This document shows positions 11,201-54,991 of a stretch of 64,000 nucleotides of DNA, one piece after another. The stretch's first letter is position 1. Every line of letters starts with the position of its first letter. The position numbers and the translations under genes are program-made. The notes beneath the pieces are model-generated. The model did no database searches, was not told the DNA's origin, and saw nothing but the letters and a program-made list of their open reading frames with translations. Location: the IMG/VR virus record IMGVR_UViG_3300044821_000131, positions 1-64,000 of that record. One strand, 5' to 3'.

Positions 11201-12044
11201 CAAAGTGTTGTTCGGAGATGCCCGTCGAAACGGCTGGAATTTGCTTCGACCTAATGCGCTACCGCACAAGATTGATGGATTCCGGGTATGGTTGAAAGAC
11301 GGACACTTAGTGTCGTGCGTAAAAGCGTTCGACAATAAGTTTTACGATGCTAGGAATTCGGCTGAGGATTGTGGCTTGGTCTACGACATTATCAACGCCG
11401 GACCCCGGCATCGGTTTACCTGTTCTGGCGTCTTAGTGTCCAATTCCATACCCTACGGTGCTACATCTACACTGTTGGAGCGCATGATCGAAGCAAATAC
11501 GGGCATCAAGCCGCCGGAAGGTACCGGCCAGAAAATGATCGATACGCACGCGCGGCGATATCCTGTAGCCACCAAATTCCAGAAATCTTTGGAAGATATG
11601 ATCCAAGACCCCGGCTATTATCGGTCGATTTCGGGCCGTGTGCGTCATTTCTTTTATACGAATCTCGGGGATCTGGACGGCTTGTCGGAATATACGTTGG
11701 AGGGGATATTGTCCCCGTTGAAGCGCCAAGCGCGTAATTTCCCCATGCAGAATTTGGTGGCGGATTCTACGGCTCGGGCGTTGATTCGATTCATCAAGGA
11801 ACGTCGTGAACGAGATTTCCATCGTTCCCGGGTCATGATGTTGTTGTACGACGCTATGACTGCGATTGCTCCGCTGGAGGCTTTGAAGAATACGGAGGAG
11901 TTGTTACGTAATTGTCTGACTATATGGTGCCCTTGGACAGTACACGGATCGACGTTTAACTTCGATGTCGACACCAGTATTGGATTTAGATGGGGTGTAA
12001 AACCTACAAAGAGAGAGAAGGAATTATTGAAAAAATATCTATGA
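8217..12044 (+). CDS. polA: Family A DNA polymerase with N-terminal uracil-DNA-glycosylase-like domain, 3'-5' exonuclease and intein
   Basis: UDG-like YYTAVCKY and KPKLIVCLGKLPF; exo IDAEW, GHNAHADM, FDTMFA, YSLRDVDCT; pol TETGR, DMDLKTAEV, KVGNF/SIPYG, ARNFPMQ, LLYDAM. Confidence 0.92.
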   Translation: MNKPTHPPIPPLLLDAEEQVSMPLMPMTDGGVTKKPSRMYPEVFGDMEPPKQLWRSRRIGDAMVTLPNQKKVKGVLHVCGRGSKTAQIMFISPSVFREEESITHTSEPSMLKGPAGNLFTRSLYRCGFKEEEWYYTAVCKYNVPKLKPTAQDLRWNEQILRDEIETIKPKLIVCLGKLPFDILFKTKFKLKDIQGGFFRSEEFNCMLYPMDTLLTPLMKPEYQERVIVDLKEIRRALNEIQGTTVVKVATSYSVIDTAEKLQNLMTDLGDEINADRLHAASIDAEWHGQTAWSGQLRSWQMAWKPGVAACVRLTSPVKGKSEYVMDQPLPVIREIIKPTMNNPKLKWIGHNAHADMAWMDQHLDLEVFGRFLFDTMFAQQLLNEYSDLKLERCSVQYTDLGRYDIDLLLWKKKHKFDEEDNEGYGLVPDEILIPYSLRDVDCTLRIYPALLKQLIQQNLSSYYFNYTLPFTTDGFYELMSTGLPIDSDYLDEMRETFTHHGGMLLDEFRKSVKREADTLLHTMLRDRSIRMGGTLEQGTNAFIEMFKLAKRGPEAEKELREHLQAFVEDSSDLAQMLPLYLHWRDCSTFNISSTDHLRRWLYDVKKFQPIKTTKKDGIQMAWDKVLNMPPDKQLQYTPAADKQTIKVFAAKDPMVAQIEELKSVQNITKIFLKGVDEKGREQGIHKWIQMDGRIHSNFAVTETGRPRSWRPNILNWPKAITKPIEKAFERINIAVIKQESAKLGTVAADKHVKALRLLADSHASEKDQSAAMTALVDAGYSSDAIDAFVRCVSLPVSLRSAARAPEGCAFIDMDLKTAEVVALGRLSGDENLIKVLTEPDTQFARIDKENAKKAVRICYNDNVELPEAELDTALLVALDDPRILRDASGNILHPLRDVHWEMAEETGGKPREKLDERLYRDGSGKVGNFCLLHSSRVLTLRGEIPIQDVKLTDLLWDGVDWVSHEGVVCNGLKQVYEYQGLWATDNHEVWTETGDKVLFGDARRNGWNLLRPNALPHKIDGFRVWLKDGHLVSCVKAFDNKFYDARNSAEDCGLVYDIINAGPRHRFTCSGVLVSNSIPYGATSTLLERMIEANTGIKPPEGTGQKMIDTHARRYPVATKFQKSLEDMIQDPGYYRSISGRVRHFFYTNLGDLDGLSEYTLEGILSPLKRQARNFPMQNLVADSTARALIRFIKERRERDFHRSRVMMLLYDAMTAIAPLEALKNTEELLRNCLTIWCPWTVHGSTFNFDVDTSIGFRWGVKPTKREKELLKKYL
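11004..11444 (+). mobile_element. Mini-intein (147 aa) in DNA polymerase motif B
   Basis: Starts CLLHSSRVLT, block B ATDNHEVW, ends VYDIINAGPRHRFTCSGVLVSN, +1 Ser; removal restores KVGNF-SIPYG; no endonuclease motifs. Confidence 0.9.
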
Positions 12045-14054: not shown

Positions 14055-15527
14055 TTGAAAGGAAGCTTTGTGGGACGAAAGAAAACAGAAAAGACGAATC
14101 CGTTCGCGGGACCCAAGTCCTTTAACATCTTGGAAGACGGCGCCAATCTCGTGAGTGCAGTTCGAGAAACCTTAGCCCGTACCGAGGCCGATGTAATGCT
14201 TGCTGGGGATCCCAACAAGCCCAAGCTCATTCTCCCGGTACCGTCGTTCGCGTTCTGCACCGCCATCAAGGCCCGTGGTTTGGTGGCAGGTACAATCGTG
14301 GATATTATCGGTGCCGACGGTATCGGCAAAACCAGTCTCATGTTCACCATTATGGGCTGGGCGATGGCGGCCAATGGACCGTGCATGTATGTGGAGACCG
14401 AAGGCAAGCCGCTGGATCAGACTCGTATCGAAGCTTGTCTTCATACGGATCGTTCGATTGCCGGTAAGATGTACAAGGCGATCTACATGACACCTGCTCG
14501 CGAATTGCGTGAGGCTGTCAACAAAATCGAAGAGTGGCTTATTTCGATCCGCGCGCCAGGTACAGTCATACCTCCCACTGCCACTGCAGTCATCGGGCTC
14601 GACACGTTTAGCAAGTTGATGTCTCCCTCTGAGGCCGCAGGTTTTTCGGCTTACGACAGTGCGGGGGACAAGGAAAAGAAGAAACAGGAAGACAAGAAGA
14701 AGGCGTTCAAGGCTGCTAAGAAGGGCGTTGAACCCGAGAAGATCAAACAGAAGGAAGCTGAACCGGACGAGTCCAAAGAACTGGGTTCTGGCAGCAACTT
14801 CGGTCATGCCAAACTGTCGCAGGAATGGACTCGGCGTCTGCCCTATTATCTGTCCAAGTACAATGCTATTCTCATCTTGAACCGGCATCAAAACGACAAG
14901 ATCGACATGGGCGGTGGTGGAGGTGTGTTCCTGTCGGCGGAGGCCAAAGATGCGTTTAATCGTACTTCTATTGGTGGCCGGGCTTGGTTGCAGAGTGCGG
15001 CTTACGAATTCATTCTTTCTCGGAAAGACTTTGTTCGCGCGACTGTTTCAGGTATCAGCGTCAAGTTGGCCGCCAATATCAAGATGTCGGTTGCCAAGAA
15101 TGGCTGGGGTCCGTTGCAGGATGGTATGTATCGGCTTTCCTTAATGCCGCGGCGTAATACGGAGAGTCAGTACGAGCCGGTGATTGACTTTGATCCATTC
15201 CTTCCGGATATTTTGAAGGATCACAAGTTGATGAAGTTATCCATGAAGAACGCCAACACGGTGGTATGTTCGGATTTCAACGAGCAGGGCAGAGCCGAGG
15301 AGTACGATCTGTACACGTTTTGCTCTATGTTCTATCAACGTCCGGCATTGGTCGAAGATCTTGGCCGGCGTCTCGGTTTTGCTCACTACGACGATCGTAG
15401 TATTTTCCCCAAGTTTATGACTGTACCCGTACCGACGATTGATACTCCATCGTCCGAGGAGTCTGTGGAAGCTCCAGTTTCGTCCGAGGATACAGCTAGT
15501 GTAGCAGTTGCTTCAGATCCAGCATGA
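14055..15527 (+). CDS. RecA/UvsX-like recombinase (start may be GTG 14070)
   Basis: Walker [14 protein letters not shown], Walker [24 protein letters not shown] motif, VAKN. Confidence 0.8.
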
Positions 15528-16768
15528 ACATTAACCGGTTACAGTTCAGACAAGCTTTGGCCTCGCTGGCGGGCCGCCCATTCCGTTCGATCGTCTGGCC
15601 ATCCAAGAGCGATGGTGATTTAACTGATGATTTTCGGAGTTGGGCTGAGACGGTTGAGGTATCGTATCCAGTTCTAACGGACAGTATATTTGTAATGTCG
15701 GAGCGTTTGCCTATTCTGAATGACATACAACGGAAGCAGCGCTCAGTTTTGGTACAACTCCTCCTGGATAGAAACGATGAGACCGCATTGGTCGTAGATT
15801 CGTTTCTTGGAGGAAAGGACTCTCTCTTCTTGGCTCAGCTGTTCGAGAATCGAACTACGGCTGAGGAGTGGGTGTCCAGCATGTGCCCGGCACGTATGTC
15901 ATTAACCATTCGTCCTATCGACAATCAACACAAGATCATGATCGCATCTCTTGGTAGTTATGTCTCCGTCGGCGGCAGTTGACTAACTGCCTTCTTTTTC
16001 CTCATGGCATAAGACTTGATTTTATCTTTGAGGATTTAGACGGTTGTCTCTACTGCAATTTTAAAGGTCCTTTGGAAGAGCACATTCCGTGCTCCCTGAT
16101 TCGTCAGCCCGCATGGCTGATGGAACGCGTCAGTCGTCTTGCCGGAGCGGATGACCTATATGACGGCCTCTGTGCAGTTGCCGTGGTCTCATCAGCCCGG
16201 GTAGCAGTTATTTTTGAAAAGCATCATTTGGCGGCTCAGATATTTGATCACAAAAGTTTGGCCGCCGGTCTGCGTGTGGCTTGGATTAGTTTAAGCGACT
16301 ATGAAAAAATCGTACATTTTGAGGTCTGACTTCTGTGCCCCGTCGTTGGTGTGGCGCGCAGGAGATGTTTTGGTGAGTGCTGGCGAAGGTTCTACTTTTG
16401 ACCTCCTGAGTGTACATCCTGAAGGTCACCCTTTGCCGTTCACCTTGGTGCCCCGGGATAAGCTTCTCGACATGTCACGTTTTCTTAAGCAGCAGCCCAG
16501 TAAGAATTTCTGGGGCTTACGACGACTCAACGTGTTAAGCTTAAACTACAACGTTGAGTATTTGGAGAATGCGACTACGGAGTCGTGGGGGAATTTGCCG
16601 TTTAGATTTGAGAGTCTCGGTGAGTTGGTTTATTACTGCAAGCTGCACTCGCTGATAACCAGCAGTTATTGGGTCGTTCATTTCGAGTATCTGCCCGACT
16701 TGGTGACGGCGCACTCGATAAAATTGTTTCAACGTAACCGGATCGAAAACACAAAAGAAAATATATGA
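15524..16768 (+). CDS. Three hypothetical ORFs (15524-15982, 15979-16329, 16301-16768)
   Basis: Overlapping stop/start chain between recA-like and recQ. Confidence 0.6.
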
Positions 16769-18456
16769 CAATTGCACAAGAGACAACAGTGGAACGACTA
16801 CCCGAGGTAACAGACCGCAAACACCCGGTACAGAACGATGCCTTCTTGCGAGGTATCAAGAACATGCCCAAGGCTTTGTCTCTCATGGGTTACCAAGAAT
16901 TGCGCAAGGGTCAAGACCGTGCAGTGTACAACCTGTTATCACATCGAGACACTTTGGCCATCTTACCTACTTCTGGTGGTAAGACTGCCATTTACGTCTT
17001 GCCGACGATCTGCATGGACTGGAAGTGTCTAATCTTCAGCCCTTTGGTTTCCTTAATGCAGGATCAGGTGATGGGACTACAGCGTTCAGGTTTATCGGCC
17101 GGGCAGGTGAGCAGTGGTCAGACACCGACGGAGAACATGATGGCGCTGAAAATGTGGGAGATGGGAGAGTTGCAGTTTCTGCTGGTGGCCCCGGAACGTC
17201 TTGAGAGTGCTGAGTTTCTTAAGGCTATGCAGCTCACACGTCCGAATATGGTGTGTCTCGACGAAGCCCACTGCGTTTCTCAATGGGCAGACAGCTTTCG
17301 TCCCGCGTATTGTAAAATAGGTAACTTCATTGCCTTATCGAATCCGGATGTGGTGCTGGCCATCACGGCTACAGCTACTGTGGAGGTGGAGACAGACATT
17401 CGTCGTGTACTAGGCATCAGTGGTGCCGCGCGCGTCGTCTATCTTCCCCGGCGTGAGAATTTGGTGTTCAAGAGTCGGGAGTTTAAGAATGACGATCAGG
17501 TGTTGATGTTCATTGAGAACGCCACCGGTCCTACAATCGTTTACTGTGCTACTCGCAAACGTACCGAGGATTTATTCAATCAGTTTCGTGACGAGATAAC
17601 AGGTGGTTGTTTAGTATATCATGGCGGCATGACACCGGACGCAAGGTTTAGTGCCCAACAGATGTTCATGACGAACCAGACTCGGGTTATGTTCGCGACC
17701 AACGCTTTCGGACTTGGTATCAATAAGCCGGACGTTCGAGCGGTGATTCATCGGGACGCGCCTAACAGTATTGAGGCGTACATCCAAGAAAGTGGCCGCG
17801 CCGGGCGTGATGGCGAGAAGTCGGATTGTGTGTTGCTGTTGGACGAGTCGGCTTTCAGTACACATTCCTATTTCATCAAGTCTACCTATCCTGAGCGGGG
17901 AATAATTGATAAGGTTTATTATCTGATCAAGACCAGCGTGGATAGTTCCGGGCAGCTGTTGATGACTGGCGCCGACATGGCATCCCGGCTGTCGTTACAG
18001 GAGCAAGTGGTCAACTCGGCGCTAGGTATTCTTAAATCGTCTGGTGTGATAGATCGGACGGATGAGCAAAGTCGTCCGGTGACCATTCAGATAATTCAGG
18101 ATCCTACGGATGAGAAGTTTCTCAAGTTGGTGGAAGACGTGAGGAAGTATGGGCTTTTGTTGCCGAATGGAAATTTTGAGGTCAGCATGGAACTGTTGCT
18201 GGCGCAGACCAACCGTAAACAGAAGACCACGGAAACGCACTTCAAGAAATTGGAACAGGATGGGTTTATCATTTACACACGTCCGTTCCGCGGTAAGACC
18301 ACGAGTTTGAAAGGGGACCTCAGTTTGGTTGATTTTGAACGGATTAAGGTTCGTCGGAATGAGGCTTACGAAAAGCTTGACTGTCTTCGGGAGTTCCATA
18401 ATGTTCCTGATCAGGATAAACATGAGTACCTGCAGAATTACTTTGGTGTAAAATGA
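16765..18456 (+). CDS. recQ: RecQ-family DNA helicase
   Basis: PTSGGKT, SPLVSLMQDQV, APERL, DEAHCVSQW-DSFRPAY, TATAT, ATNAFGLGINKPDVR, QESGRAGRDG; no HRDC domain seen. Confidence 0.93.
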   Translation: MTIAQETTVERLPEVTDRKHPVQNDAFLRGIKNMPKALSLMGYQELRKGQDRAVYNLLSHRDTLAILPTSGGKTAIYVLPTICMDWKCLIFSPLVSLMQDQVMGLQRSGLSAGQVSSGQTPTENMMALKMWEMGELQFLLVAPERLESAEFLKAMQLTRPNMVCLDEAHCVSQWADSFRPAYCKIGNFIALSNPDVVLAITATATVEVETDIRRVLGISGAARVVYLPRRENLVFKSREFKNDDQVLMFIENATGPTIVYCATRKRTEDLFNQFRDEITGGCLVYHGGMTPDARFSAQQMFMTNQTRVMFATNAFGLGINKPDVRAVIHRDAPNSIEAYIQESGRAGRDGEKSDCVLLLDESAFSTHSYFIKSTYPERGIIDKVYYLIKTSVDSSGQLLMTGADMASRLSLQEQVVNSALGILKSSGVIDRTDEQSRPVTIQIIQDPTDEKFLKLVEDVRKYGLLLPNGNFEVSMELLLAQTNRKQKTTETHFKKLEQDGFIIYTRPFRGKTTSLKGDLSLVDFERIKVRRNEAYEKLDCLREFHNVPDQDKHEYLQNYFGVK

Positions 18457-22221: not shown

Positions 22222-22881
22222 TCGCGGAACCCCACCTTTGGCGTTTGCACAACAAGAGGCACGTCGCCGTGGCGAACTTGACGCCGTACAACCAAATTCT
22301 CAACCCATGGAAACCGATCCGATTTCTCCTGCATCTCCACCCTCGCCACGCATGAGCGGGCGCTTGTTCCCTGTGACATTGACCTATAACCCTCCTCCGG
22401 GCACACACACTCCCGGTGGTGATCCACTGCCCAGTATCAGCATAAAGTTCAAAGCTCGATCCGTGGATATCAAGGAGCATTTCATTTCCTTGAATCACAG
22501 CCCCGACATCGACATTGAATTTACAGCGTTTGCCGAAGATCTGATTTGTAAGATCGGCGAGAAGGCCTATCCGGTGAGTTGGGTTGGATCTACTTTCAGC
22601 TTTCCAGACAACGACGTATATGGTATTCAGTTGTTGCGTCGGCAAGAACCGCCCGGTACATCAGGATCGTGACGGTGGTGTAAACTGAACTATCAATGAT
22701 AAAAAATGGTCGCATCGAAATTGGCAAGACCCCTAGCGTTGTTACTGGCGCCTGTTCTACCCGCATCTTGGAGGGTGAACCAGTCGGCGATCATGAACAC
22801 CCGAATGATCCCGAATTCAGAAAACTTGCCTCTCTGATGGTGTTACCAACTCCCGACGATGTGAAGGAAATCGATGGCTGA
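22202..22881 (+). CDS. Two hypothetical ORFs (22202-22672, 22696-22881)
   Basis: Directly upstream of, and overlapping, the putative portal gene. Confidence 0.55.
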
Positions 22882-25624
22882 TTTTAACGATCTCGGTTAC
22901 GTGGGCTTGGGTGGCGAACGTCGCTTCGACGATCCATTCCTGCTGCCCAGCAGCGCGTCAATGCCGTTGACGCTGGAGACGGCCATCGACATGTGCCTTT
23001 TCCTGTACTACATGAACCCGCAGTACGTACAGGCTTCGGCGCGTGTCGCCCGGCACTTCATTACCGATTTCGATTTTCCTGGCGATGGCAGTAAGCAGGA
23101 AAAGGAAGATTTCAAAACCTATCTCAAATACCAGTTGCAGCTGCCCAGCTTCATGACTGAAATGGGTGACGAATGGAGCTGTTTTTCTGGTGATACGAAA
23201 GTCAACACGCGCGATGGTGTATTTGAGATTAAAGACTTGGCTGACAAACGTGTGGAGGTTTTGTCCAAAGGCGGTGTGTATCGTCCAGCGGATTTCAAGT
23301 GCTATGGTAAGCAGCCACTGATGGAGGTCACATTTAGCGATGGCCGAAAGGTTTACGCAACGGCGGCGCATCAATGGGAAGTGATCAATCGTAGTAACAA
23401 ACAAGTAGTCACTACAACGGACAAACTAATTCCCGGCTATAAGATTGAACGTACGGTGGCGCCTAGACCCGATCGGAACGACGAATACTACGAGGGTATA
23501 CGACATGGATTCATCTTTGGCGACGGCTCTCTTTCTTCCAGAAATAAACGCTCGACAGCTCTGTTTGTTGGCGCGAAAGACGCGGCCTTGTTTCCATTTT
23601 TCAAAGGTTACGGAAACACGCCTCGCCCTAGACGCGACAAAAAGGACATGGTTCGCATATCCGGATTCCCGGCCGCCTATAAAAGTCTACCGTCACGTAC
23701 GGCTAGTCCTTCGTACTGGTACGGTTTTGTTTGCGGTTTCTTGGCCGCGGATGGTTGTGTGTGTCCTTATGGCTGCGCCATGCTTACACAAATATCAAGA
23801 GCTACGATTGAGGCCGTAGTAGAGCAGCTTCCAAGGATCGGTATGTGTGCTGGTCCGATTCGCTCGCAGCGTCGTATCACGGATCTTAGCAAGTACAGCA
23901 AGTATCCAAATGCCGTGTACGATTCGACTATACATTTCGTGACGTTATTGAAACGCTTTATGCTGCCGCAGGATTTTCTGATCCCGGCACATCGTGAAAA
24001 GTTTATAAAGAAATTCAAAGGCGGTAATTACGGGCGTTACGTCATCATCAGGTCTGTCAAGAAAACGGATCGGGTTGAACCTGTATACTGTTGTACTGAG
24101 ATGCAGACACACAGGTTTGTAGTTGATAATGGTATCTTGACGGGCAATTGTTTTGGTAACTGCTTCGTACGCATACACATGCCGTTCGATCGGTTTCTGA
24201 TAGACGACCGGACGAACACGATGTACGCGCTGGATTATTTCGGTCGTAATTCCAAGTACAATTATCAAACCATGACGTATGAGGTTCCGGATCCTCTCCA
24301 TCCGGGCAAACGGGTTCGGCTACGCTTCAGAGATCAGCGGTCGCGCGATGCCTCTCGTATCCGGCTTCGTAAGTTGTATCCACGTTTAGTCACGATTCGA
24401 CACAACATTATTTCTGGTGGAAGTGAATACATTTACCGATTCGATCCCGAGTTTGTGAGCGATGTGAAAAAGGGTCGTTTGTATGTGGTGAACGAGACAC
24501 CGATGAAAATGTTGCAGGCGATCAAGAATAACCACGATTTCGCCTTTGACGCCGATTCCATTTTCCATCTCAAGTCTCCAACGGTGAGTGGTGTTTCGAA
24601 TGCTGGATGGGGCATCCCGAACACGATCGCGAATTACCGCAATCTTCATCAGTTGCAGGTGTATCGCAAGATTGATGAGGCGGTCGGCTTGGACTACATG
24701 CTGCCGTTTCGCCTCTTCAGTCCTGCGGAACACTCTGGACAGAACGACGCGTTCAATTACATGATCTCATCTCGTTGGGGTTCCGAGATCAAGAAGATAA
24801 TTGACTCTCGCCGTCGTGACAAATATGCCATGCACTCGCTGCCATTTCCGGTCACCTACCAAGAATTTGGCGCGCAAGGCAAGACCCTTACTTCGAAGGA
24901 TATGATGGAATTTCAGACCAGCGCGCTGTTGGATGGCATGGGCTATCCGCAAGAGCTGTTTAAAGGCAGTCTTACTTGGATGCAGGTTCCAACGGCGATG
25001 CGTCTGTTCGAGAACTCTTTCATGTTCCTGCACATGGGTTTCAATAACGTTACTGGATGGGTTACGCGACGGGTTAGAACGTATCTCAATCAGCCTCAGA
25101 TGGCTGTCACCATGCAGAAACCGTCCTTGGCGGACAGTTTGGAACGCAAACAGTTGGTGTTTCAATTGGGAGCCATGGGCGAAATCAGCCGTGAAAATGC
25201 CTACAACTCTCTGGGTATTGATGATCCGGTGGGCGAGATGAAGAAGCGGCTCGAAGAAGATATGGAGATTCAACGCGAGCAGATTCGCATGCAGTCGGAA
25301 TTTCAGAAGGAAGTGGAATCCGGATCCCTGTTGGCCCCGGAACAAGCTTCTGGTGGGTCTGCGTCCGGCAGCTTGCCTGGTGGAGGTGCCGCCGGTAGCG
25401 TGACTCCGACCGATTCTCAATCTCAAGCTCAAAGTCTGGCCTCCTACTGGTTGAGTATCCAAAGTCCTGGCGAGCGCCGACAAGCTATGAATGCTGTTCG
25501 AGCTCAGAATCAGGGCTTGTACGCCAGCGCCAAAGAGCAAATGGAGCGCATGAGATCTCAAGGTAGTAGTCAGGGGCGCCAAGCTGTGGAACAGCAGGCG
25601 CAGCAGCAGGGTGCCACGCAGTAA
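22874..25624 (+). CDS. Putative portal protein, intein-containing
   Basis: After intein removal GDEWS-CFGNCFV resembles the portal GNAF motif; LYPRLV, IFHLK, GWGIP, LLDGMGYP; extein about 590 aa with low-complexity C-terminus. Confidence 0.62.
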   Translation: MADFNDLGYVGLGGERRFDDPFLLPSSASMPLTLETAIDMCLFLYYMNPQYVQASARVARHFITDFDFPGDGSKQEKEDFKTYLKYQLQLPSFMTEMGDEWSCFSGDTKVNTRDGVFEIKDLADKRVEVLSKGGVYRPADFKCYGKQPLMEVTFSDGRKVYATAAHQWEVINRSNKQVVTTTDKLIPGYKIERTVAPRPDRNDEYYEGIRHGFIFGDGSLSSRNKRSTALFVGAKDAALFPFFKGYGNTPRPRRDKKDMVRISGFPAAYKSLPSRTASPSYWYGFVCGFLAADGCVCPYGCAMLTQISRATIEAVVEQLPRIGMCAGPIRSQRRITDLSKYSKYPNAVYDSTIHFVTLLKRFMLPQDFLIPAHREKFIKKFKGGNYGRYVIIRSVKKTDRVEPVYCCTEMQTHRFVVDNGILTGNCFGNCFVRIHMPFDRFLIDDRTNTMYALDYFGRNSKYNYQTMTYEVPDPLHPGKRVRLRFRDQRSRDASRIRLRKLYPRLVTIRHNIISGGSEYIYRFDPEFVSDVKKGRLYVVNETPMKMLQAIKNNHDFAFDADSIFHLKSPTVSGVSNAGWGIPNTIANYRNLHQLQVYRKIDEAVGLDYMLPFRLFSPAEHSGQNDAFNYMISSRWGSEIKKIIDSRRRDKYAMHSLPFPVTYQEFGAQGKTLTSKDMMEFQTSALLDGMGYPQELFKGSLTWMQVPTAMRLFENSFMFLHMGFNNVTGWVTRRVRTYLNQPQMAVTMQKPSLADSLERKQLVFQLGAMGEISRENAYNSLGIDDPVGEMKKRLEEDMEIQREQIRMQSEFQKEVESGSLLAPEQASGGSASGSLPGGGAAGSVTPTDSQSQAQSLASYWLSIQSPGERRQAMNAVRAQNQGLYASAKEQMERMRSQGSSQGRQAVEQQAQQQGATQ
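23180..24148 (+). mobile_element. Intein with LAGLIDADG homing endonuclease (323 aa)
   Basis: Starts CFSGDTKV, block B ATAAHQW, GFIFGDGS and GFLAADGC, ends VYCCTEMQTHRFVVDNGILTGN, +1 Cys. Confidence 0.92.
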
Positions 25625-31161: not shown

Positions 31162-31885
31162 TTTTAATAAATTGGAACACAGCATCAGTTTCCACATTCA
31201 AAATTTAGAACTTCGCACAACTCTAATCGACTTCGTGCAGACCAATCAATCGCGGTTGAAGTCATCCCCAGCCTCGACCATGACCAGCCGTCATCACGCT
31301 GAGTCTGGTGGTCTGCTCCAACACATCAATGAGGTTATCGGCCTGTCTTGTGATCTCATTCAATACATGGCGTCCTTCGTTCACCGCGCTGATGTTCTGC
31401 AAGGTCTCGAAGACGTGGTGGTCGCTTCGATACTGCACGATATTCACAAGATAGGAGATCCGTTCGGACGTACCTATTATGAGCCGAACATGGTGAAAGC
31501 CAGTAAGCGTAAGGACGAGACCCAGATGGTGCAGTCCACGGCCAAGCCTTATGCCGTCACTGAAAACACATACAAATGCAGTCATGCACAATTGGTCTCA
31601 CCGATCCTCATCGCCACTGCCGCGCTTGTGGACCGCAATTTGGAGCAGCTACCTGAAGGCGATCTATCGTTGCTGTTTGTGCAGGCCACCTCTCCTAAAT
31701 TGTGGTCTTTGTTGAACGACACGGTAAAGTTCACGATTCGTCATCACGACGGCGCCTACGGCACATCCAAGTACGAGCTGGCCGGCAAGGAGACCGCAGT
31801 GATGCTGGCAGTACATACGGCCGATATGATCTCGTCCCGGAGCAGTCGGTTGTTTGTGACGCCGGCAGAGGTTGCAGAAGACTAA
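31136..31885 (+). CDS. HD-domain phosphohydrolase (YhaM-like HD, no OB fold)
   Basis: HHAESGGLLQH, LHDIHKIG, HHDG, HTADM. Confidence 0.8.
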   Translation: MTIEQIQTNFNKLEHSISFHIQNLELRTTLIDFVQTNQSRLKSSPASTMTSRHHAESGGLLQHINEVIGLSCDLIQYMASFVHRADVLQGLEDVVVASILHDIHKIGDPFGRTYYEPNMVKASKRKDETQMVQSTAKPYAVTENTYKCSHAQLVSPILIATAALVDRNLEQLPEGDLSLLFVQATSPKLWSLLNDTVKFTIRHHDGAYGTSKYELAGKETAVMLAVHTADMISSRSSRLFVTPAEVAED

Positions 31886-31903
31886 GATCTGCTGCAGAAC
31901 TCT

Positions 31904-33827
31904 ATGAAGTATTTTGTAAATGGACATTGCTTGAATCCAAAGGCAAACGATGACCTTGTTGTGCCACCGCTCTGTGCGTGCTGCCATAAACCACAGCATA
32001 AATGGAACACCATGCGCGTTCTCGGATGCGGTGGAGATTACGAGGACTGGCCGTGTAGACTGTGCCAGCCAGAAGAATATGAAAAAACTTTACGAGACGC
32101 CTATCTCTAGTCGGCACGATATAAAAGCTGAGCCGCAGCCAACTAATGATAGTCATGAACCAAATGACTCCTGCGGATAAACAGAACGCGCCAATAGAGC
32201 GATTTGATGCTCCACCGGGCTCGGCGGAGCGTGCTGGCCAGAATATGGAACGCGTTTTTAGGTGGTCTAAGGTCTGTGACTGTAAATCCACCGCGTCAAC
32301 GTGTGAAATTCGATGCAAGGGCGAATACGTCAACGCCACATGGACGATGACTGCGACATTTTACCCAATGCTTTCTTGCGATGAATGCGGCGCGACATGG
32401 AAACTCGACGCAGTTAACGTGGGAGTTGACCTACAGTCCCGCCGAAAGAAATAAAAATATGGTATTAACTCAATAGACCAACGACCAATGACACCAAACC
32501 AAGCCAGAGATGGACTGCTCGAAGCCATGCCGCTGACAACGGAAGCGGTAACGACGATAAAGAAATGGGGACGGGAATGCTCTGATGAGCGCAAGGCTGA
32601 CCCTGAAACCTACAATAAATGCCCGCGCTGCTATGGTCTCCACAGCATCCGTGGAAACTTCGACAACCTGTGTGATGGGTGCGTGAAAACAATCCTCGAA
32701 CACTTCCCAAACCATGAAAGCGTGCCGCACATCAAAGCAGCACTCGCTTAGATGTTTAACGTCCGCATGAGTCGCGGTAAATCGTATGGACATCACAAAA
32801 TTAAGCATTAAAGAATGTGCGGAACTTCAATCGCACGAAGGCAATTCCGAACTGGACAGGCGCGTAATGGAAGAACAGGACCGCATCGTTCGACTTTCCA
32901 TTGAGCAACTCACGGCGCTCTTGCTTGCCAGAAGTATTCGGCCAGATAAAACCGACATCAGGCTGAGAGCGGTAAGAGATGAACTCCTCACTCGCTTAGA
33001 TGTTTAACGTCCGCAGAATCCATGCGGCGATTTCAAAATGACATCCAAAATTGCAACTGAACCGTTCAAGCACGGGAACAACCCGCATTGGCTTCATGCG
33101 GTGGTTCGGCGACTGGTTGCATGTCTGCACGTTCACCGCTGGGAAGAAACGCTTTGGAACGCATGGGGCATAGACGTGGAGCAACGCTGCCGCTGCGGTC
33201 AATACCGGCATCACCTGTTTGAGCATCGTCGCGGTTTCTGTCAAGAACCAAACTGGCAACTTGGAAAACATCCCAACCGATACATGGCAAAATGAACACT
33301 GATAATAGTCGAAAATATGAAAACGAAAATAAGATATTCGGATATGAATGGTCGGACATCCAGCGAGCGCAGCAAGGCGGAAGGCTGGCGCAGCCAGTCC
33401 GAACCGGCAACCTAAACGCATCGGTGCAATGCTTCCGATGTCACAAATACTTTCGGCTGCCGCAAACGATGGAAACCGACCCGTGGCCGGTGCAATGCCT
33501 TCACTGCGGCTATATGCACACGTCGCATGACGGAGAATCGGCTATGTGGCCGAAATGGGGCGATGATAACAAATGGCATACAGTGGCCTAACGCCGTGCG
33601 TGAGCCATCCCGGATTCACGACACACAACAATCAAAAACCTGAACGAATAAAGTGCAGCGGCCAACCGGGATTGGCTCGACGCACTTGTTAGGCAGCACG
33701 GTTTATGAAAACAAAACCAATGATAACGGAAACAGTGACACTCTCTTTTGAGGTGAAGCTCAACTACCAAAACGATGAAGGCCGGGCATGGCTCGTAAAA
33801 TCGCTGAAGCGTGATGCTCGGAGATAA
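31904..33827 (+). CDS. Small cassette-like ORFs (31904-32110, 32146-32454, 32488-32751, 32786-33007, 33038-33295, 33292-33591, 33705-33827)
   Basis: Short, often Cys-rich ORFs separated by attC sites or remnants; 33705 read directly (MKTKPMITET...DARR*). Confidence 0.55.
32741..33015 (+). repeat. 27-bp direct repeat cactcgcttagatgtttaacgtccgca (32741-32767, 32989-33015)
   Basis: Exact match; each copy contains an attC core GTTTAAC and they flank ORF 32786-33007. Confidence 0.9.
33002..33110 (-). other. attC site
   Basis: Minus strand: GCCGAAC-CACCG-CAT[G]AAGC-CA[A]TGCGG...CCGCA-TG-GATTCTG-CGGAC-GTTAAAC. Confidence 0.75.
33586..33694 (-). other. attC site (canonical geometry)
   Basis: Minus strand: R'' GCCTAAC, 5 bp, L'' CGT[C]GAGC, CA[A]TCCCGG...CCGGGA-TG, L' GCTCACG, 6 bp, R' GTTAGGC. 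Confidence 0.9.
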
Positions 33828-33934
33828 GGAAATAGGCCGCACAGCCTTTGCTCTGAACCGTCTAAAGGAAATTTTGCCGAACAGTTGATTCTACCAACTT
33901 GGTTGGTTTATTTGCCAGCGCAAATTTAAAAAAC

Positions 33935-33964
33935 TTGCACACCACAACTCGATTCTGATATAAA
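33935..33964 (+). promoter_or_regulatory. Sigma70-like promoter, extended -10
   Basis: TTGCAC-N18-TATAAA with TG at -15/-14, after an A-tract. Confidence 0.55.
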
Positions 33965-34110
33965 TGACAGCATAGATGTCATAGCAGATGTCCTAAGTTC
34001 CACGTGGAATTCTCTTGGCTGGTCCAGATTGTGACATAATCTATGACACCTTTAGCGTTAACTGTCTCGAAGTATGACACTGTTTTGATCGAATTTGATG
34101 CCGGTGTCAT
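33964..34110. repeat. Cluster of TGACA/TGTCA motifs and short palindromes
   Basis: ATGACA-N7-TGTCAT (33964-33982), ttccacgtggaa, agattgtgacataatct, tatgacac twice (34042, 34073), gtgtcat (34104). Confidence 0.6.
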
Positions 34111-34142
34111 TTCCTGAATTTCGGTAACTAGTTGTCTATTAA

Positions 34143-34577
34143 ATGTTTCTTATGGAACAATCTAAGGTCTGTACTGAAAATGCTGCTCGAAATGTCATTA
34201 TTTCTTGCAAATGCGGCGCCGAAGCTCGGGTCGGTCAGCGCACGTGCCTAGAGTGTCATGCCCGACAAGAGCGAAACTATAGACGAGATCGACACTTGTC
34301 TTTGGAGATATGGTCCGTGTACCTGCAGAGTACTGCGTTACACGCCGACCCCGATACCCGGCAGCACTTTGAGGACAGGATCGACACACATCTGGTCGAG
34401 GTCTTGACATCTGGTACTGACCCGTCCTACATTGCCCTGCCGGTAGGTTTTCTTCCGGATGACGTCGTGATCGTGGCCGATCAGTCAGGTCATATCAAAC
34501 AGGTAAAACTGGATCAAATTATCAATTATGGTACGAAACGGAGAACTACAAAAAAATTATCACATCCTGACCGCTAA
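34143..34577 (+). CDS. Hypothetical protein with N-terminal Cys cluster
   Basis: CKCG and CLECH motifs. Confidence 0.55.
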   Translation: MFLMEQSKVCTENAARNVIISCKCGAEARVGQRTCLECHARQERNYRRDRHLSLEIWSVYLQSTALHADPDTRQHFEDRIDTHLVEVLTSGTDPSYIALPVGFLPDDVVIVADQSGHIKQVKLDQIINYGTKRRTTKKLSHPDR

Positions 34578-34881
34578 GGAAGCCTGCTCTCTCGACCCGG
34601 CTCGCTACCGGGTGCCACCACCTGATGCACTGCGTATGTTGCGCCCAGGGCACGTCGTCAAGCTGTTGGTCGATACTGCAAACAATAAAGGCGAAGAGGT
34701 GTGGGTGGCTGTCACCTACCGCCGCAACGCCAACTTCATCGGTATGGTCCATGGCGAGTTGGGCCGGACTCAGCATCACGGGCTGTATAAAGGTTGCGCC
34801 GTGAAGTTTCGAGATCGGAACGTTTTGGACGTTCTGTTTCAGTTGCCGAAAGATACCCCTAAGAGTGTGAGGATCATTTGA
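34528..34881 (+). CDS. DUF2314-like small beta protein
   Basis: VKL...EEVWVAV...FIG...G..VKF...VLDV pattern. Confidence 0.45.
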   Translation: MVRNGELQKNYHILTAKEACSLDPARYRVPPPDALRMLRPGHVVKLLVDTANNKGEEVWVAVTYRRNANFIGMVHGELGRTQHHGLYKGCAVKFRDRNVLDVLFQLPKDTPKSVRII

Positions 34882-35435
34882 TGCAATACAAGATCTGGGT
34901 GGATCTGGACGGGGTGCTGGCCAACTGGCACAAGAGCGCCTGCGAGGTCTTTGGGGTGCCATACCCAACCCGCACCGTGCTGTATCGTGACTGGATAGCC
35001 GAAACTACCAAGTTGCCAATAAATAAGCTGCTTGATCAGACGGACGATGTGCCCAGCTTCTGGAAGGATATGGAGCTTCTGCCGGTGGCGCCGCGGCTCA
35101 TATCCTACTTGGATGTCAATTTCCCCGATTGGCATTTTCTTACACATCCGACTTTGAGTTCGGTGTCATGGGGCGGTAAAGCGGCATGGGTCCGTAAGTA
35201 TTTCGGTAATGACGGCATGCGGCGCTTGGTGATGATGGGTGGTAAAAAGTCCCTGTTCGCAGATCGATATTCCGTTCTGATCGATGATACCCGCAAAATC
35301 ATCGACGAGTGGACCGCGGCCGGCGGCTTGGCATTTCATTGGGTTGAGTATACTTCTGATTGGAAAGAGGCGCATGAGACGCAACTGATACGGCTGATTA
35401 CGTATCTGGATTCGTTGAAAGAAAGCACAAAATAG
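34878..35435 (+). CDS. HAD-family 5'(3')-deoxyribonucleotidase-like protein
   Basis: WVDLDGVLANW, WGGKAAWV, KSL, VLIDD. Confidence 0.8.
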   Translation: MMQYKIWVDLDGVLANWHKSACEVFGVPYPTRTVLYRDWIAETTKLPINKLLDQTDDVPSFWKDMELLPVAPRLISYLDVNFPDWHFLTHPTLSSVSWGGKAAWVRKYFGNDGMRRLVMMGGKKSLFADRYSVLIDDTRKIIDEWTAAGGLAFHWVEYTSDWKEAHETQLIRLITYLDSLKESTK

Positions 35436-36654: not shown

Positions 36655-37698
36655 GTGACGACCGGCCGAAGTTTATGGCCGGTCGTTTTCGTTTATATCA
36701 ACAAACCTCGGTTAACTAAAAATCACATGAATAATTCGAAACAAGATGGTTTGGACATTAGCGTAGTCAGTGAAGCGGCGGCTAGTCGTTATGGTGATTA
36801 CCGTTCACGCATGGACAGTTCGAGAATCACCTTCTCCAAGTCGAGCAAGGAGTTGGCAGCCGAACGCTTGGCCTACTTGGGTCAGCTCGAAGTTCCACCC
36901 AGTTCCGTGCCCATGTTTGACTTGGAGCGCACCAGTAACGAAGTGTTGCATCATCTGACGGAACACAACGTCAAGCAATTGCTCATTTCGAGCATGGCCG
37001 TTCTCGGTGTTCTCCGCGGTAATGACCCGCGTACGGTGTTTCGCCTTACCAAGGATATTCGTGTGCCCGATGAGGTCACCCGGCTCCGCAAGGAGAACGA
37101 ACGTCTGTCTGGCGATATCGTCATTGCTCAAGCGACGGCGGTCAACGCCAAGCGGTATTCCGACAAGCTGGAGGCCAAGATCGAGGAACTGGAAGAACAG
37201 CTGGTGGCCAAGCCCGAGGACACGGCAGCCTTCGAGCAGGCACTACAGACCAACATCGAAGCGTCCGACGCTTTCGGCGTGTATGGTGAACCGCTGCTTG
37301 CGCTGTTCGATCAGGTGATCGAGGCTTTGGAATTGAACAAGGAAAATCCGGACTCGGATTTTATTGTCGGTACGCTTCAGCACGTCATGGACGCCATGAG
37401 CAACGTTATTCTGCCTTGGAAGGAACTTGCACGTCCGCTGACAATCCCGGCCGCGGAAGAAGTCCCGCCGGATCTCGCGGAACGTATCGCGTCGGCGGCG
37501 CCCGAAGCCTTGGAAGTGCCGATCGCACCGGCTCCGCCTGTGGCAACCGAAACTCCTGAAGTGTCAGCGCCGGTCGCGGCACCCGAAAATACTACGATGC
37601 CGGAGGCGACGGAAGTTGCCGCGGTATCCGAGCCTCCGGTGGCTGAAACTTCGACCGAAGTGTCGGTTGTGGAGACGCCCTCGGCGGATACGGTTTAA
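36655..37698 (+). CDS. Coiled-coil protein with acidic Pro/Ala/Glu tail (likely start 36727)
   Basis: Heptad-like RLRKENERLSG...KLEAKIEELEEQL; low-complexity C-terminus. Confidence 0.6.
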   Translation: MTTGRSLWPVVFVYINKPRLTKNHMNNSKQDGLDISVVSEAAASRYGDYRSRMDSSRITFSKSSKELAAERLAYLGQLEVPPSSVPMFDLERTSNEVLHHLTEHNVKQLLISSMAVLGVLRGNDPRTVFRLTKDIRVPDEVTRLRKENERLSGDIVIAQATAVNAKRYSDKLEAKIEELEEQLVAKPEDTAAFEQALQTNIEASDAFGVYGEPLLALFDQVIEALELNKENPDSDFIVGTLQHVMDAMSNVILPWKELARPLTIPAAEEVPPDLAERIASAAPEALEVPIAPAPPVATETPEVSAPVAAPENTTMPEATEVAAVSEPPVAETSTEVSVVETPSADTV

Positions 37699-37709
37699 TT
37701 ACTCATCTC

Positions 37710-37752
37710 GACGGGTGGGAACAAGCAATTGTTCTCACCCGTCTTTTCTTTC
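37710..37752 (+). terminator. Intrinsic terminator
   Basis: gacgggtgggaacaa-gcaa-ttgttctcacccgtc followed by ttttctttc. Confidence 0.8.
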
Positions 37753-41207: not shown

Positions 41208-43357
41208 ATGAGCAATCCGCGTGATCCCCTTACACCTGAACAAATCAAGCACTGGCGTGACATGCTTGTCGGTATGTTCGGTCCTTGGGCCTTCATAATG
41301 CCAGAGGAGGACATCCAGCGTATGAGGGAGCATTTACAAAGTGATTTGGATTCACATGAAATCAATGACTCAAAAGAATAAACGGAAACGGTTGGTGTGA
41401 CTTGTTATGCCACGAGAACACTCAATGTCGTGCGAATGGCCAGAGGGTTGTAGCTGTGGAGCATCAGCGTGGAATCGATTGGAGCGTGAGCGTGACTGGT
41501 ATCGCTGTCGCGTAAAACTGTTGGAACAGCACAAGTCAATGCTCCGAGAGCCAGAACTAACGCTGGTATGTGATATCATGGCAAACGGCCAACTAATGCC
41601 CGACCCAGACGGGAAACGATATGGGCCTAACGCAGACTTGTCAGGCATATCGATAACAAAACTGACATAAAACATATGACTGAAACTCCACAAACCAAAA
41701 AAACTCTGCTGCCGAAATACGAAGACGGAAGCGGATATAGGATCGAAAGAGAACTGTGTGTCTTCTGCCACAAACCGCTGCTCGACTCATTCCACTTTGC
41801 CAGCGATGACGGTAAGCAACACTGGCACACATACTGCGCAAACAGAAAAGGCGTAACGTCCCGGATGAGCCGCCCGCGATAGGCGACTCACGAACACCAA
41901 AAGATTTATGATCAAAAAGAAAGCGTCAACGCGGGTTGGCTCCATCGGGCGGGTTATGCCTCAGTTGGTGATATGCGACCATCATGGGCATGACTACTGC
42001 GAGGGATGCCAACATAACGAACCCCACAAAGCAAACAGTGAGGACGACGGCGAACTCTGCACATGCGGCGGAGTCTGTGGGGCAAACGGGCCAAACTTCA
42101 ACGTGCGCTGCCTGCGACATAACGCCTCAAGCTGAGGCACGTCGGACTAAAGACTTTATGAAACCTGTGAAACCAAAAATCCGTAGCGATAAAAACAAAC
42201 CGTCCAACCGACGTTGCCTCCGGCGCGGTGTTAGGCGACACGATTGGATAAACGGCCCCGATATGATTCCGAAGCCTGTAAAAAAGGCGATCAAAGAATG
42301 GCGGGCCATCACAAGTCCAATGGAGAAAATCGGATTCATCCTGCACGCTTTCGACCCGACAATACAGTTCCGCTGTCCCGACAGTAACCGAGTGTTTGAT
42401 ATGTCAATAAGTGCCGTCAAACGCATAAATGCCGCCTTGTCGCCTAACGCCTCAAGCTGAGACATCGGCGACCTGCGATGTCCAGCAACCCAAAACCTTA
42501 TGCTCAAAACTGAAAGCGCCAATACCGATTGTTCTCCAGCGCCGGGTTCGGGTGCTGGCTTGGATAACTGAATGGGTCGAAGCAATCTGGAAGGCGTTTC
42601 GACCGCCAAAACGGAAGCGGCTGGAACTGCGGCTCTGCACATGGACTGCCGCAGACAAGCTGATTCGGGAAGGTGGCGGCGCTTGGACGGTAGCCGCCGA
42701 AGATGACCACAACATGGTGCTTGGGTGTGTGTGGTTGGAACGCCTGGAACAATATCCCGACTTCTCGAAGCAGCAGTCGAACGGTGAAGTCAGCGATGGC
42801 GGGACGCTGACTTCCGAATTGAAATCCAAACGCGAACCCGCCATTCGCTGAATTGTTATGGCACTAATACACGAAGAAACTGAACACGAGCTTGGAGCGA
42901 AACTGATGGTATCGGAACGCCAAGAAGGTGAAACCCGCGCCCCGTGGAAAATCATCACGCTCGACGCAGACCGATTCGAGAATCTAACACCAACGGAACT
43001 CCGAAAGCTCGGAAAGTGGCTCATACACCAAGGGAGGCGCATCGGAAGTGAATACAAGTCCAACGGTGCGTTGAAGGCCAAGAGCCATAACGAAAAGCTG
43101 ATCGACAGCGGAAGGAAATTATGAGCTTTAAAAACGGCGGATATAACAACGGGCTTGGTCGGCCAAAGGCGAAGAAGCTGTTCGCTCCGGCGCGTTGTTC
43201 TACGGCGTGGTTGAGCGTGGAATCCCGTTGGCCAGTCAAGGGTGAACTCGAAACCAAAAGATGCCTGACAATCCTAGACGCGGTAATAGAAGGAAAACGC
43301 GCCCTCCAATGTGGGGCGTGGCGCGTAACAATAACTCAGTGCAACGGAGCGCCGTAG
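41208..43357 (+). CDS. Small cassette ORFs (41208-41381, 41407-41670, 41676-41882, 41908-42135, 42158-42460, up to 42429-42851, 42858-43124, 43121-43357)
   Basis: One ORF per inter-attC segment; no function recognised. Confidence 0.6.
41851..41959 (-). other. attC site
   Basis: Plus strand GCGTAAC-gtcccg-gatgagccgcccgcg...cgcggg[t]tggctc[c]atc-gggcgg-GTTATGC. Confidence 0.82.
42117..42236 (-). other. attC site
   Basis: Minus strand GCCTAAC-ACCGC-GCC[G]GAGG-CA[A]CGTCGG...CCGACG-TG-CCTCAGC-TTGAGGC-GTTATGT. Confidence 0.88.
42442..42552 (-). other. attC site
   Basis: Minus strand CCCGAAC-CCGGC-GCT[G]GAGA-ACAATCGG...CCGATG-TCTCAGC-TTGAGGC-GTTAGGC. Confidence 0.85.
42776..42861 (-). other. attC site with a short deletion next to R''
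   Basis: Plus strand GTCGAAC-ggtga-agtcagcgatggcggg...cccgcca[t]tcgctgaatt-GTTATGG. Confidence 0.75.
43085..43203 (-). other. attC site
   Basis: Minus strand GTAGAAC-AACGC-GCC[G]GAGC-GA[A]CAGC...GCTG-TC-GATCAGC-TTTTC-GTTATGG. Confidence 0.82.
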
Positions 43358-43440: not shown

Positions 43441-44985
43441 ATGACCGACGACGTAGCCGCACCCCCGGGAGTGGAAATTACAGCTTGGGATGACTTTCCC
43501 AAGAAACGCCAGCAGATTCTCACTGGCGCTAAAACTGCCCTGCAAGAATCATTTCCCCAATCCTATGGCGGGGTGCGGCTTGAACTACACGACCTCGATT
43601 ACGACAATCCCAAGGAATTCACATTGTCGGAACAGAAGGACGCCCTGATGAAGAACCAGTTTCTCCATCACAAACTCAAGGGTACGTTAAAATTATTCGA
43701 TGAGAAAACCGGTGCGTTGCTGGATCAGAAAACTCAGACGCTCATGCGAGTTCCTTACCTTACCGAGCGTGGTACATTTCTACATAATGGTAACGAGATC
43801 ACCACCAACAGCCAGGCTCGGCTCATGCCGGGCATCTATACGCGGCGTAAGAATTCTGGTGAAATTGAGTCTCAGGTGAACGCCAAGCGTGGATCGGGAT
43901 CATCCTTCCGTGTACGTCTCGAACCCGAGTCCGGTTTGTTTAAGGTCGACATCGGTCAGAGTAGTCTGCGGCTTTATTCGTTGTTGAAAGATATTGGAGT
44001 GTCCGATCAGCAGATTGAGAAGACTTGGGGACCAGAACTGTTGAAGAAGAATCAGGACTCCTACGATGCCAGGGTGTTCGAGAAGGCTTACGATCGATTG
44101 GTGCGGCGTCCCGATCCGAAGGCCACGCGCGAGCAGAAGGTAGAGGCAATCAAGCAGGCTTTGGACAATACGCAGGTGGATCGGTCGGTGGTCATGAGGA
44201 CATTGCCGAATCTGTTCGCCACCAAGTTCTCCTCGATGTTGGCATTCGATCCTACCATGCCTCGGCCGCAGAGCGAGAAGAAGGAATTCAATCACGACGA
44301 TTGCCTGATGCTGGCGGAGCTGTTGAATCAGAAGTTTCATGCTGGCATTCCGTTGGATGCCCCGACCTCAGAGATCGTAGCCATGGTGATGGGTGAAATA
44401 CAGAAGCTCATGCCGTCGGTGAATGAGCAGATGCTGGCACAGACTGTAGGGCAACAGCAGAAAGAGGCGCGATCGAAACAAGGTTATCTGATGTTGAATT
44501 TCGAACCGGAAGACGCCATGAGGTTTTCCAAGTGGTCAAGGCAGAATATCCCGGATTCGAAACTGGGTGCGTCCGGACGTGAAGACACCCCGCATATCAC
44601 TTTGCGTTGGGGTATCAACACGGGTGATATTGGGCACCTGAAATCATTCTTCTCAGAACAGTCCCCAGTCCAAGCCACGCTCGGCGCTCTGACTCGATTT
44701 CCTGGCGTCGACGACGGAAACCAAGATGCACTAGTGGCGCCGGTAGAGTCCGAATCCATTCACAAGCTACACCATGCTGTCGTATCGACGTTTCATTCTC
44801 ATCTCGGACCCGTCAAGTTCAATACCTACCGGCCACATGTTACTCTAGCCTATTTAAGGCGTGGCGAGATGCCGGAATTGGAAGGTAACAAGGAGTTTCA
44901 TGGCCAGACATTCCAGTTGAAGAAGGTGGTGTATTCCAATCCTCGCACCAGCTCGTATATTGACATTCCGCTGGGTACAAATTAG
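43441..44985 (+). CDS. RNA polymerase beta subunit N-terminal fragment fused to a 2H phosphoesterase domain
   Basis: VPYLTERGTFLHNGNEITTNSQARLMPG matches RpoB IPLMTxxGTFIINGxERVVVSQLxRSPG; C-terminal PHITL (44593) and PHVTL (44836). Confidence 0.82.
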   Translation: MTDDVAAPPGVEITAWDDFPKKRQQILTGAKTALQESFPQSYGGVRLELHDLDYDNPKEFTLSEQKDALMKNQFLHHKLKGTLKLFDEKTGALLDQKTQTLMRVPYLTERGTFLHNGNEITTNSQARLMPGIYTRRKNSGEIESQVNAKRGSGSSFRVRLEPESGLFKVDIGQSSLRLYSLLKDIGVSDQQIEKTWGPELLKKNQDSYDARVFEKAYDRLVRRPDPKATREQKVEAIKQALDNTQVDRSVVMRTLPNLFATKFSSMLAFDPTMPRPQSEKKEFNHDDCLMLAELLNQKFHAGIPLDAPTSEIVAMVMGEIQKLMPSVNEQMLAQTVGQQQKEARSKQGYLMLNFEPEDAMRFSKWSRQNIPDSKLGASGREDTPHITLRWGINTGDIGHLKSFFSEQSPVQATLGALTRFPGVDDGNQDALVAPVESESIHKLHHAVVSTFHSHLGPVKFNTYRPHVTLAYLRRGEMPELEGNKEFHGQTFQLKKVVYSNPRTSSYIDIPLGTN

Positions 44986-54571: not shown

Positions 54572-54991
54572 GGGCACGTACTGGTATCGATTGTTGTTGG
54601 GACTGAAAGACTGCGTGTAGCGGATGGTCGTTGGCCGCTTTAAACTCCGACCAAAACGAAAACGCTAATAGCGGATTCAATATGGGGCCAAGTGTGGCCG
54701 AAGCTGACGCGCTCCTCGCTAAGTTCGGATACACTGAAGCCGTTCTGGCCTGATTAAACAGGCCTCCCGATCTGCCGGGTTAGATGCTCGCTATACCGGC
54801 GGATCGTCACCAGCGAGACCAAGCCTTGGATAGGGCAACGGCTGTTTTTCTGAACAGAGCCGAGAATCTGGTTGGGAGTTTGTCTGAAGCTGGTTGTCGG
54901 TCCTTTCAGGCAGAGTATAAAATCGAATACACACGTAGCGGTTTGAAGCACTAGCAGCAAGACAGGGGTTCGACTCCCCTCGTGTCCACCA
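54572..54991 (+). ncRNA. ssrA: tmRNA (one-piece, 420 nt)
   Basis: Acceptor stem GGGCACG/CGTGTCC-ACCA with G3:U; T-arm aggggTTCGACTcccct; pk1 gcgg/ccgc plus ggtcg/cgacc; probable tag ORF 54664-54753 ANSGFNMGPSVAEADALLAKFGYTEAVLA*. Confidence 0.93.

Follow-up and report, generated by a model that had tools for sequence, protein, structure and literature searches.

Integron attC sites in reverse orientation relative to the genes of a 204-kb peat phage

attC sites in the accessory-gene region of the phage

The analysed window comprises the first 64 kb (64,000 nucleotides) of a 204,257-bp viral record with direct terminal repeats (IMGVR_UViG_3300044821_000131), which is rated 100% complete and was found in its entirety only in a peat metagenome. 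The genome has a GC content of 51%, nearly all genes are located on the + strand, and it encodes a family-A DNA polymerase fused to a UDG domain, helicases, a split RNA-polymerase-like subunit, and a tmRNA. No near-identical phages were found in the INPHARED collection, and the NT5C-like gene flanking the locus has no relatives in viral contigs. Between positions 32754 and 33882, small + strand ORFs lie among attC-type sites in different states of preservation (array 1), and a second cluster is located at 41625-43206 (array 2; Table 1). Pfam and PHROGs searches did not assign a function to the ORFs of these arrays.

Table 1. Features of the two attC arrays, with scores of the covariance model R1
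Position	Strand	Feature	R1 (bits)	E-value
32741-32767	+	Copy 1 of an exact 27-nt direct repeat (100% identity, spacing 248; other copy at 32989-33015), spanning the end of ORF 32488-32751 and the first 14 nt of an attC-type left arm (GTTTAAC...)		
32754-~32815	+	Left-half attC remnant: R box GTTTAAC, left arm, loop region with ATG 32786; right arm missing	not scored	
32786-33007	+	Cassette ORF, 73 aa, from the loop ATG of the remnant to the TAA inside the next R box (GTTTAA|C); no family match		
33002-33110	+	Degenerate attC, bottom strand on +; R boxes GTTTAAC/GTTCGGC; extra T on the 3' arm kept	14.2	0.1 (window); 0.0047 (3-kb search)
33038-33295	+	Cassette ORF, 85 aa; ATG in the attC loop, first ~24 residues encoded by the loop and 3' arm		
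33292-33591	+	ORF, 99 aa, zinc-ribbon-like (CxxC...CxxC; weak Pfam hits below cut-off); start overlaps the previous stop (ATGA), stop is the TAA of the GCCTAAC R box		
33586-33694	+	Intact attC, bottom (recombinogenic) strand on +; 5' to 3': R' GCCTAAC, unpaired spacer, L box, 50-nt loop, L'' arm with extrahelical T and G, R'' GTTAGGC	54.0 (- strand: 21.2)	4.5e-12
33705-33827	+	Short ORF, 40 aa, following the intact site; would belong to the same cassette; no family match		
33876-33882	+	GCCGAAC, possibly the terminal half R box where the last cassette meets the phage backbone		
39768-39896	+	Weak attC-like match between the two clusters	14.4	0.09
41625-41646	+	Collapsed site: R boxes with almost no interior	11.8	0.43
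41851-41959	+	attC of array 2, travelling with ORF 41908-42135 as one cassette	53.3	6.7e-12
42117-42236	+	attC of array 2 with the best score; ATG 42158 in its loop opens a 100-codon ORF	63.6	1.4e-14
42442-42552	+	attC of array 2 with a degenerate R'' (GTTCGGG)	53.3	6.8e-12
42776-42862	+	Weak attC-like site	21.5	0.0013
43084-43206	+	Last attC of array 2	36.3	1.8e-7

The site at 33586-33694 is a 109-nt imperfect hairpin with fully complementary R boxes. As single-stranded DNA it folds with z = -3.9 (+ strand) and -3.5 (- strand), with 0 of 200 shuffles folding as well, and it is the only strict RYYYAAC/GTTRRRY pair with complementary arms in the whole genome, ruling out a chance inverted repeat. 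The geometry that an earlier note had read on the - strand (R'' GCCTAAC, 5 nt, an 8-nt L'' with an extra C, a second extra A, L', 6 nt, R' GTTAGGC) is exactly present. On the + strand, the 3' arm carries an extra T, 5 bp, an extra G, 3 bp, 5 unpaired nt, and GTTAGGC, with the extrahelical G being the 16th and the T the 22nd nucleotide from the 3' end, compared to G16 and T23 on the bottom strand of the reference site attC-aadA7 (PMC5027507).

In contrast, the site at 33002-33110, which the note had regarded as a second full site, is degenerate and does not fold better than shuffles (z -0.8). It is nevertheless homologous over its whole length to better-preserved sites in two other phage contigs, L196 (156-265, 24 bits) and L004 (4311-4408, 29.4 bits). 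Of the several half-sites proposed around these two, only the remnant at 32754 is convincing. Two ORFs end in the 27-nt repeat in different frames, and the similarity between the two copies continues to the respective loop ATG (32786 and 33038). The GCCGAAC at 33876-33882 is only plausible, as a 7-mer alone is weak evidence, although the same variant R box occurs in full sites of the loci L024, L043, and L048. Thus, array 1 consists of one intact site, one degenerate site, and one remnant and is, as the note had stated, more decayed than the other cluster.

A covariance model from bacterial integrons recovers the sites

The left ends of the sites share the motif RYNTAACGYC, which in this genome occurs only at 32.7-33.6 kb and 41.6-42.4 kb. 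A 20-mer from one site matched another viral contig, in which six such sites flank small ORFs between a RecT/exonuclease module and replication genes. A degenerate 3'-arm pattern then identified 45 viral stretches, nearly all with the matching left arm, and a two-arm pattern found at least 120 stretches in bacterial genomes, including Verrucomicrobiota MAGs, with up to 16 sites per 8 kb. Five of these MAGs were searched for integron integrases. Four have matches above the TIGR02249 cut-off (403-475 bits, against less than 90 bits for ordinary Xer-type recombinases), and the fifth, labelled Chloroflexia, has a match split by a stop. In the three MAG loci inspected, the array begins a few hundred bases from the 5' end of intI. 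These are therefore genuine chromosomal integrons, and the repeats are their attC sites.

We aligned 65 non-redundant sites from these bacterial arrays, in which 96.4% of the cells pair and 14 of 15 inner-stem pairs show compensatory changes, while every slid control collapses. The covariance model R1, built from these sites only, was run over the window with filters off and recovered 33586-33694 strand-specifically, together with four to six more sites at 41.8-43.2 kb (Table 1). The E-values are rough because calibration was short. Nothing scored in the remaining 140 kb of the phage. The genome contains no tyrosine recombinase (no PF00589 or TIGR02249 match) and hence no complete integron, and no integron integrase was found in 11 near-complete viral records. 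Array 2, with four strong sites plus weaker ones, those at 53-64 bits lying within 0.7 kb, clearly qualifies as a cluster of attC sites lacking an integrase (CALIN; Cury et al. 2016), a kind of element already reported in phages (Qi et al. 2023, PMC9892861).

The viral members of the family keep their structure. They are 95.1% paired, 15 of 15 inner pairs covary, and the AAC/GTT triplets are invariant, although R-box pairing is looser than in bacterial sites (85.5% vs. 97.8%). Across the family, the sites are 58-160 nt long, and related viral contigs hold up to about 17 of them.

Reversed polarity, cassette exchange, and start codons in the loop

The note's claim of an inverted polarity is correct, as three criteria agree that the phage + strand, which is the gene-sense strand, is the attC bottom strand. 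The extrahelical bases lie on its 3' arm, as defined for bottom strands (PMC5027507); in three MAGs this orientation lies on the intI coding strand, with the array on the intI 5' side, which in a canonical integron is the bottom strand; and homology breakpoints fall at the left-hand AAC. Gap placement in arm alignments was unreliable for calling polarity and was replaced by family-consensus orientation and the covariance model. A codon-usage log-likelihood did not discriminate the coding strand of the short ORFs, as all - strand ORFs score negative and + strand ORFs score near zero.

The inversion is the rule for phage-borne members of this family. In bacterial arrays, cassette ORFs are found on the top strand in 197 cassettes and on the bottom strand in 16. 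In viral loci, a first count gave 48:1 in favor of the bottom strand, and with model-derived sites the count was 59:4 over about 26 distinct loci, including complete genomes with terminal repeats. The viral contigs are partly related to each other, so that these counts are not fully independent, and the ORF calls are mechanical. The flanking phage genes lie on the same strand and match phage primase/helicase, helicase, and exonuclease VIII families. We also considered that the top-strand orientation might be excluded from phages because it forms hairpin-plus-U-run terminators, but a simple scan gave no terminator-like call at any site of the window on either strand, and in the host array only 3 of about 20 sites were flagged on the top strand, with a total not above shuffles, leaving this idea speculative.

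At least one cassette has moved between unlike phages. The block from the AAC of site 41851-41959 through ORF 41908-42135 to CATAAC is about 90% identical in the phage studied here, in L004, and in a further phage contig, L022. The three upstream flanks are unrelated, the three downstream attC sites differ, and homology starts and stops at the AAC triplets. In the ORF core, synonymous changes predominate. Among 135 viral sites, pairs sharing only the downstream flank usually share the site (4 of 7 at 0.91 identity or more), but pairs sharing only the upstream flank do not (1 of 8). A cassette is therefore an attC plus the ORF that follows it on the sense strand, cut at AA|C, as predicted for integrase-mediated exchange of bottom strands. 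Together with the same architecture in about 30 viral contigs, this supports the note's view of a recurring process rather than one capture. For array 1 itself, no ORF was found in another context: ORF 33292-33591 has no relatives, and for ORF 33038-33295 only the attC-encoded N-terminus matched (residues 3-24, in L196).

The position of ATG 33038 inside an attC, remarked upon in the note, is a recurrent feature and also applies to ATGs 41908 and 42158. In 58% of the viral sites, an ATG in the attC loop opens an ORF of at least 45 codons on the sense strand, compared to 9% of the bacterial sites. Loop ATGs are in frame with the downstream ORF in 79 of 141 cases, against one third expected, and the open frame reaches the loop in 92 of 114 sites.

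Origin and possible function of the reversed cassettes

Taken together, the region 32754-33882 is probably a small, partly decayed CALIN in which each unit is a reversed cassette. On the sense strand, the attC bottom strand comes first, followed by a small ORF that often starts in the attC loop and ends at or near the RYYYAA of the next site. The sites belong to the attC family that fills the sedentary chromosomal integrons of Verrucomicrobiota, which are therefore the probable host, although this assignment rests on attC family distribution only and the family also occurs in MAGs labelled Chloroflexia, Acidobacteriota, and others.

Although integrase activity itself is not shown, the most likely explanation, which we hold with reasonable confidence, is that the host integron integrase acts in trans during infection, folding the bottom strands and exchanging cassettes by attC x attC recombination among phages and occasionally with the host array. 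According to the literature, bottom strands recombine about 1000-fold better than top strands, and folding is favored on the lagging-strand template, an orientation that natural chromosomal integrons avoid. GC skew is positive along the entire + strand, so this strand would be the lagging-strand template exposed as single-stranded DNA, although the skew may reflect transcription rather than replication. As recombination keeps polarity, only cassettes with their ORF on the bottom strand would be expressed from phage transcripts, and a separate phage pool of reversed cassettes would be maintained. In array 1, only 33586-33694 still looks recombination-competent, and with two of its three sites decayed this array may be a fossil. 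No recombination was observed: contigs of the source metagenome cover 31400-35400 as one contig at even depth 30 without joints or alternative junctions, and a rhizosphere run yielded only short identical fragments, but assembled contigs drop rare variants.

More tentatively, phages of Verrucomicrobiota, from 40-kb phages to this 204-kb phage, may maintain their own pool of reversed cassettes, with the start codon embedded in the attC loop, and shuffle them by borrowing the host's integrase. The reversed polarity could then serve to place the recombinogenic strand where it is exposed in replicating phage DNA, and to keep phage cassettes silent if captured by the host integron and host cassettes silent if captured by the phage. 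If so, the integron would be a gene-exchange system shared by phage and host, with two pools separated by polarity.

Alternatively, the hairpins could work at the RNA level in phage transcripts, for example as processing sites or by presenting the start codon in a loop, with their likeness to attC reflecting ancestry only. The folded strand is indeed the transcribed sense strand, U-G wobbles are tolerated on it (55 of 134 at one pair), the frames of the loop ATGs fit such a role, and genes here lack Shine-Dalgarno sequences. However, the same wobble pattern is seen in bacterial arrays, where the sense transcript is the other strand and the bottom-strand fold is therefore selected as DNA. In addition, the R-box AAC/GTT triplets, which an RNA role would not need, are 100% kept in viral sites, and cassette homology breaks exactly at AAC. 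We thus consider this explanation unlikely on its own, although an added RNA role is not excluded and may coexist with recombination.

It is still less likely that the sites are only homology anchors, at which phage recombinases of the RecT/exonuclease VIII type shuffle modules without any integrase. Arrays in other phage contigs are located next to exonuclease VIII and RecT-like genes, and the ~100-nt repeats are long and similar enough for recombineering-type exchange. Homologous exchange would, however, place breakpoints anywhere inside the repeats, whereas those observed fall at the AAC triplets at both ends, with the whole upstream attC kept and the whole downstream attC replaced. The attC also co-segregates with one flank only, and the phage studied here shows no such recombinase next to its arrays. 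Finally, a single piece of host integron picked up by illegitimate recombination or misassembly and now decaying would fit the decay of array 1 and the cassette ORFs' codon usage, which is unlike that of the phage core genes, but is very unlikely given the ORF polarity opposite to host arrays, the absence of homologs for 95 of 96 phage cassette ORFs in about 0.7 Mb of sampled host arrays, the two clusters separated by 8 kb of phage genes, the even coverage of the region, and the sharing of one cassette with other phages and not with bacteria.

attC clusters in phages have been reported only as rare, small finds. Qi et al. (PMC9892861) described 17 small CALINs in which attC sites without intI flank small accessory ORFs, as in the virulent-type phage genome studied here, and five of six phage attCs tested there were recombined by IntI1. 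That study describes co-oriented cassettes as typical of bacterial arrays and does not mention jumbo phages, ORFs lying systematically on the bottom strand, or start codons inside the attC, and two further full-text searches found no such report. The phage sites share attC family, geometry, covariation, and crossover triplet with sedentary chromosomal integron arrays, here the Verrucomicrobiota MAG arrays L179, L181, and L182. These host arrays have intI at one end and their ORFs on the top strand, and natural chromosomal integrons keep bottom strands on the leading-strand template, whereas the phage appears to have the opposite arrangement. The link between chromosomal arrays and dozens of phage genomes offers a way to find phage accessory genes, possibly including counter-defence genes, and to assign hosts to uncultured phages by attC type. 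Reverse-oriented cassettes also exist in bacterial arrays, where they are a minority (16 of 213), and the one phage cassette ORF with a homolog in the sampled host arrays (from locus L037, 56% identity) matches an ORF that there too lies on the bottom strand.

Integrase genes and cassettes in related contigs

We found that a viral contig with a Mu B-like transposition protein (G019, locus L192) carries three attC sites immediately upstream of an integrase, which is co-oriented with the phage genes and scores 263.6 bits on the integron-integrase model (cut-off 265); this may be a phage-borne integron with reversed cassettes. Another viral contig (G036, locus L193) has one attC site just upstream of an integrase-like gene (229.5 bits), in addition to a separate array of at least 17 sites elsewhere on the contig (locus L043).

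Of the phage cassette ORFs, only one, from the viral locus L037, has a homolog (56% identity) in the sampled bacterial arrays (locus L079). In the bacterium it also lies on the attC bottom strand, which hints at occasional phage-to-host cassette transfer. Furthermore, a 744-kb contig (CAVPYC010000001.1; loci L060, L069, L078, and L093) of a MAG labelled Chloroflexia holds dozens of sites of the same attC family and an integrase gene split by a stop, reflecting either cross-phylum sharing of an attC type or a binning or labelling problem.

Other members of the degenerate array 1 site

The homolog of the degenerate site of array 1 (window 33002-33110) in another phage contig (locus L196) is followed by an ORF that is in frame with the loop ATG and appears to encode a Dam-like adenine methyltransferase, as judged from its NPPY-type motif. 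In the source sample, a 196-nt low-depth contig shares the right arm of the same window site and then continues into a different sequence with its own TTTATG start context, and is another family member in the same community.

Further features of the phage genome

Directly after array 2, the phage encodes a 514-aa protein with a 2'-5' RNA ligase-superfamily domain and a weak Acb1 (anti-CBASS) match below cut-off, which may be a counter-defence gene next to the cassette region. The ~300-nt non-coding stretch after array 1 holds repeated TGACAT/ATGTCA motifs and AT-rich tracts and may be a regulatory region ahead of the next gene block. In addition, two strong terminator-like hairpins (12 and 15 pairs, followed by T runs) flank an ORF.

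The 1275-aa family-A DNA polymerase carries an N-terminal uracil-DNA-glycosylase-superfamily domain, and a 916-aa ORF has an intein-splicing-domain match below cut-off. Finally, the phage encodes a full-length tmRNA (103 bits, Rfam RF00023) with the unusual tag peptide ARYTGGSSPARPSLG, followed by a stop.

Positions of additional features in the phage window and in related viral and bacterial sequences
Feature	Sequence	Coordinates	Strand
Family-A DNA polymerase and ORF with intein-splicing-domain match	window	8217-12044 and 22874-25624	+
Region shared with the 196-nt contig	window	33079-33113	
Non-coding stretch after array 1	window	33830-34140	
Terminator-like hairpins	window	36657-36687 and 37710-37743	+
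ORF flanked by the hairpins	window	36655-37698	
2'-5' RNA ligase-superfamily protein	window	43441-44985	+
tmRNA	window	54572-54991	+
Three attC sites and integrase	L192 (G019)	15098-16142 and 16445-17422	
One attC site and integrase-like gene	L193 (G036)	173-264 and 474-1361	
Site homologous to window 33002-33110 and Dam-like ORF	L196	156-700	
Integrase gene split by a stop	G004:C2 (MAG labelled Chloroflexia)	165179-166118	
Bacterial homolog and phage cassette ORF	L079 vs L037	2610-2837 vs 7441-7943	+ vs -
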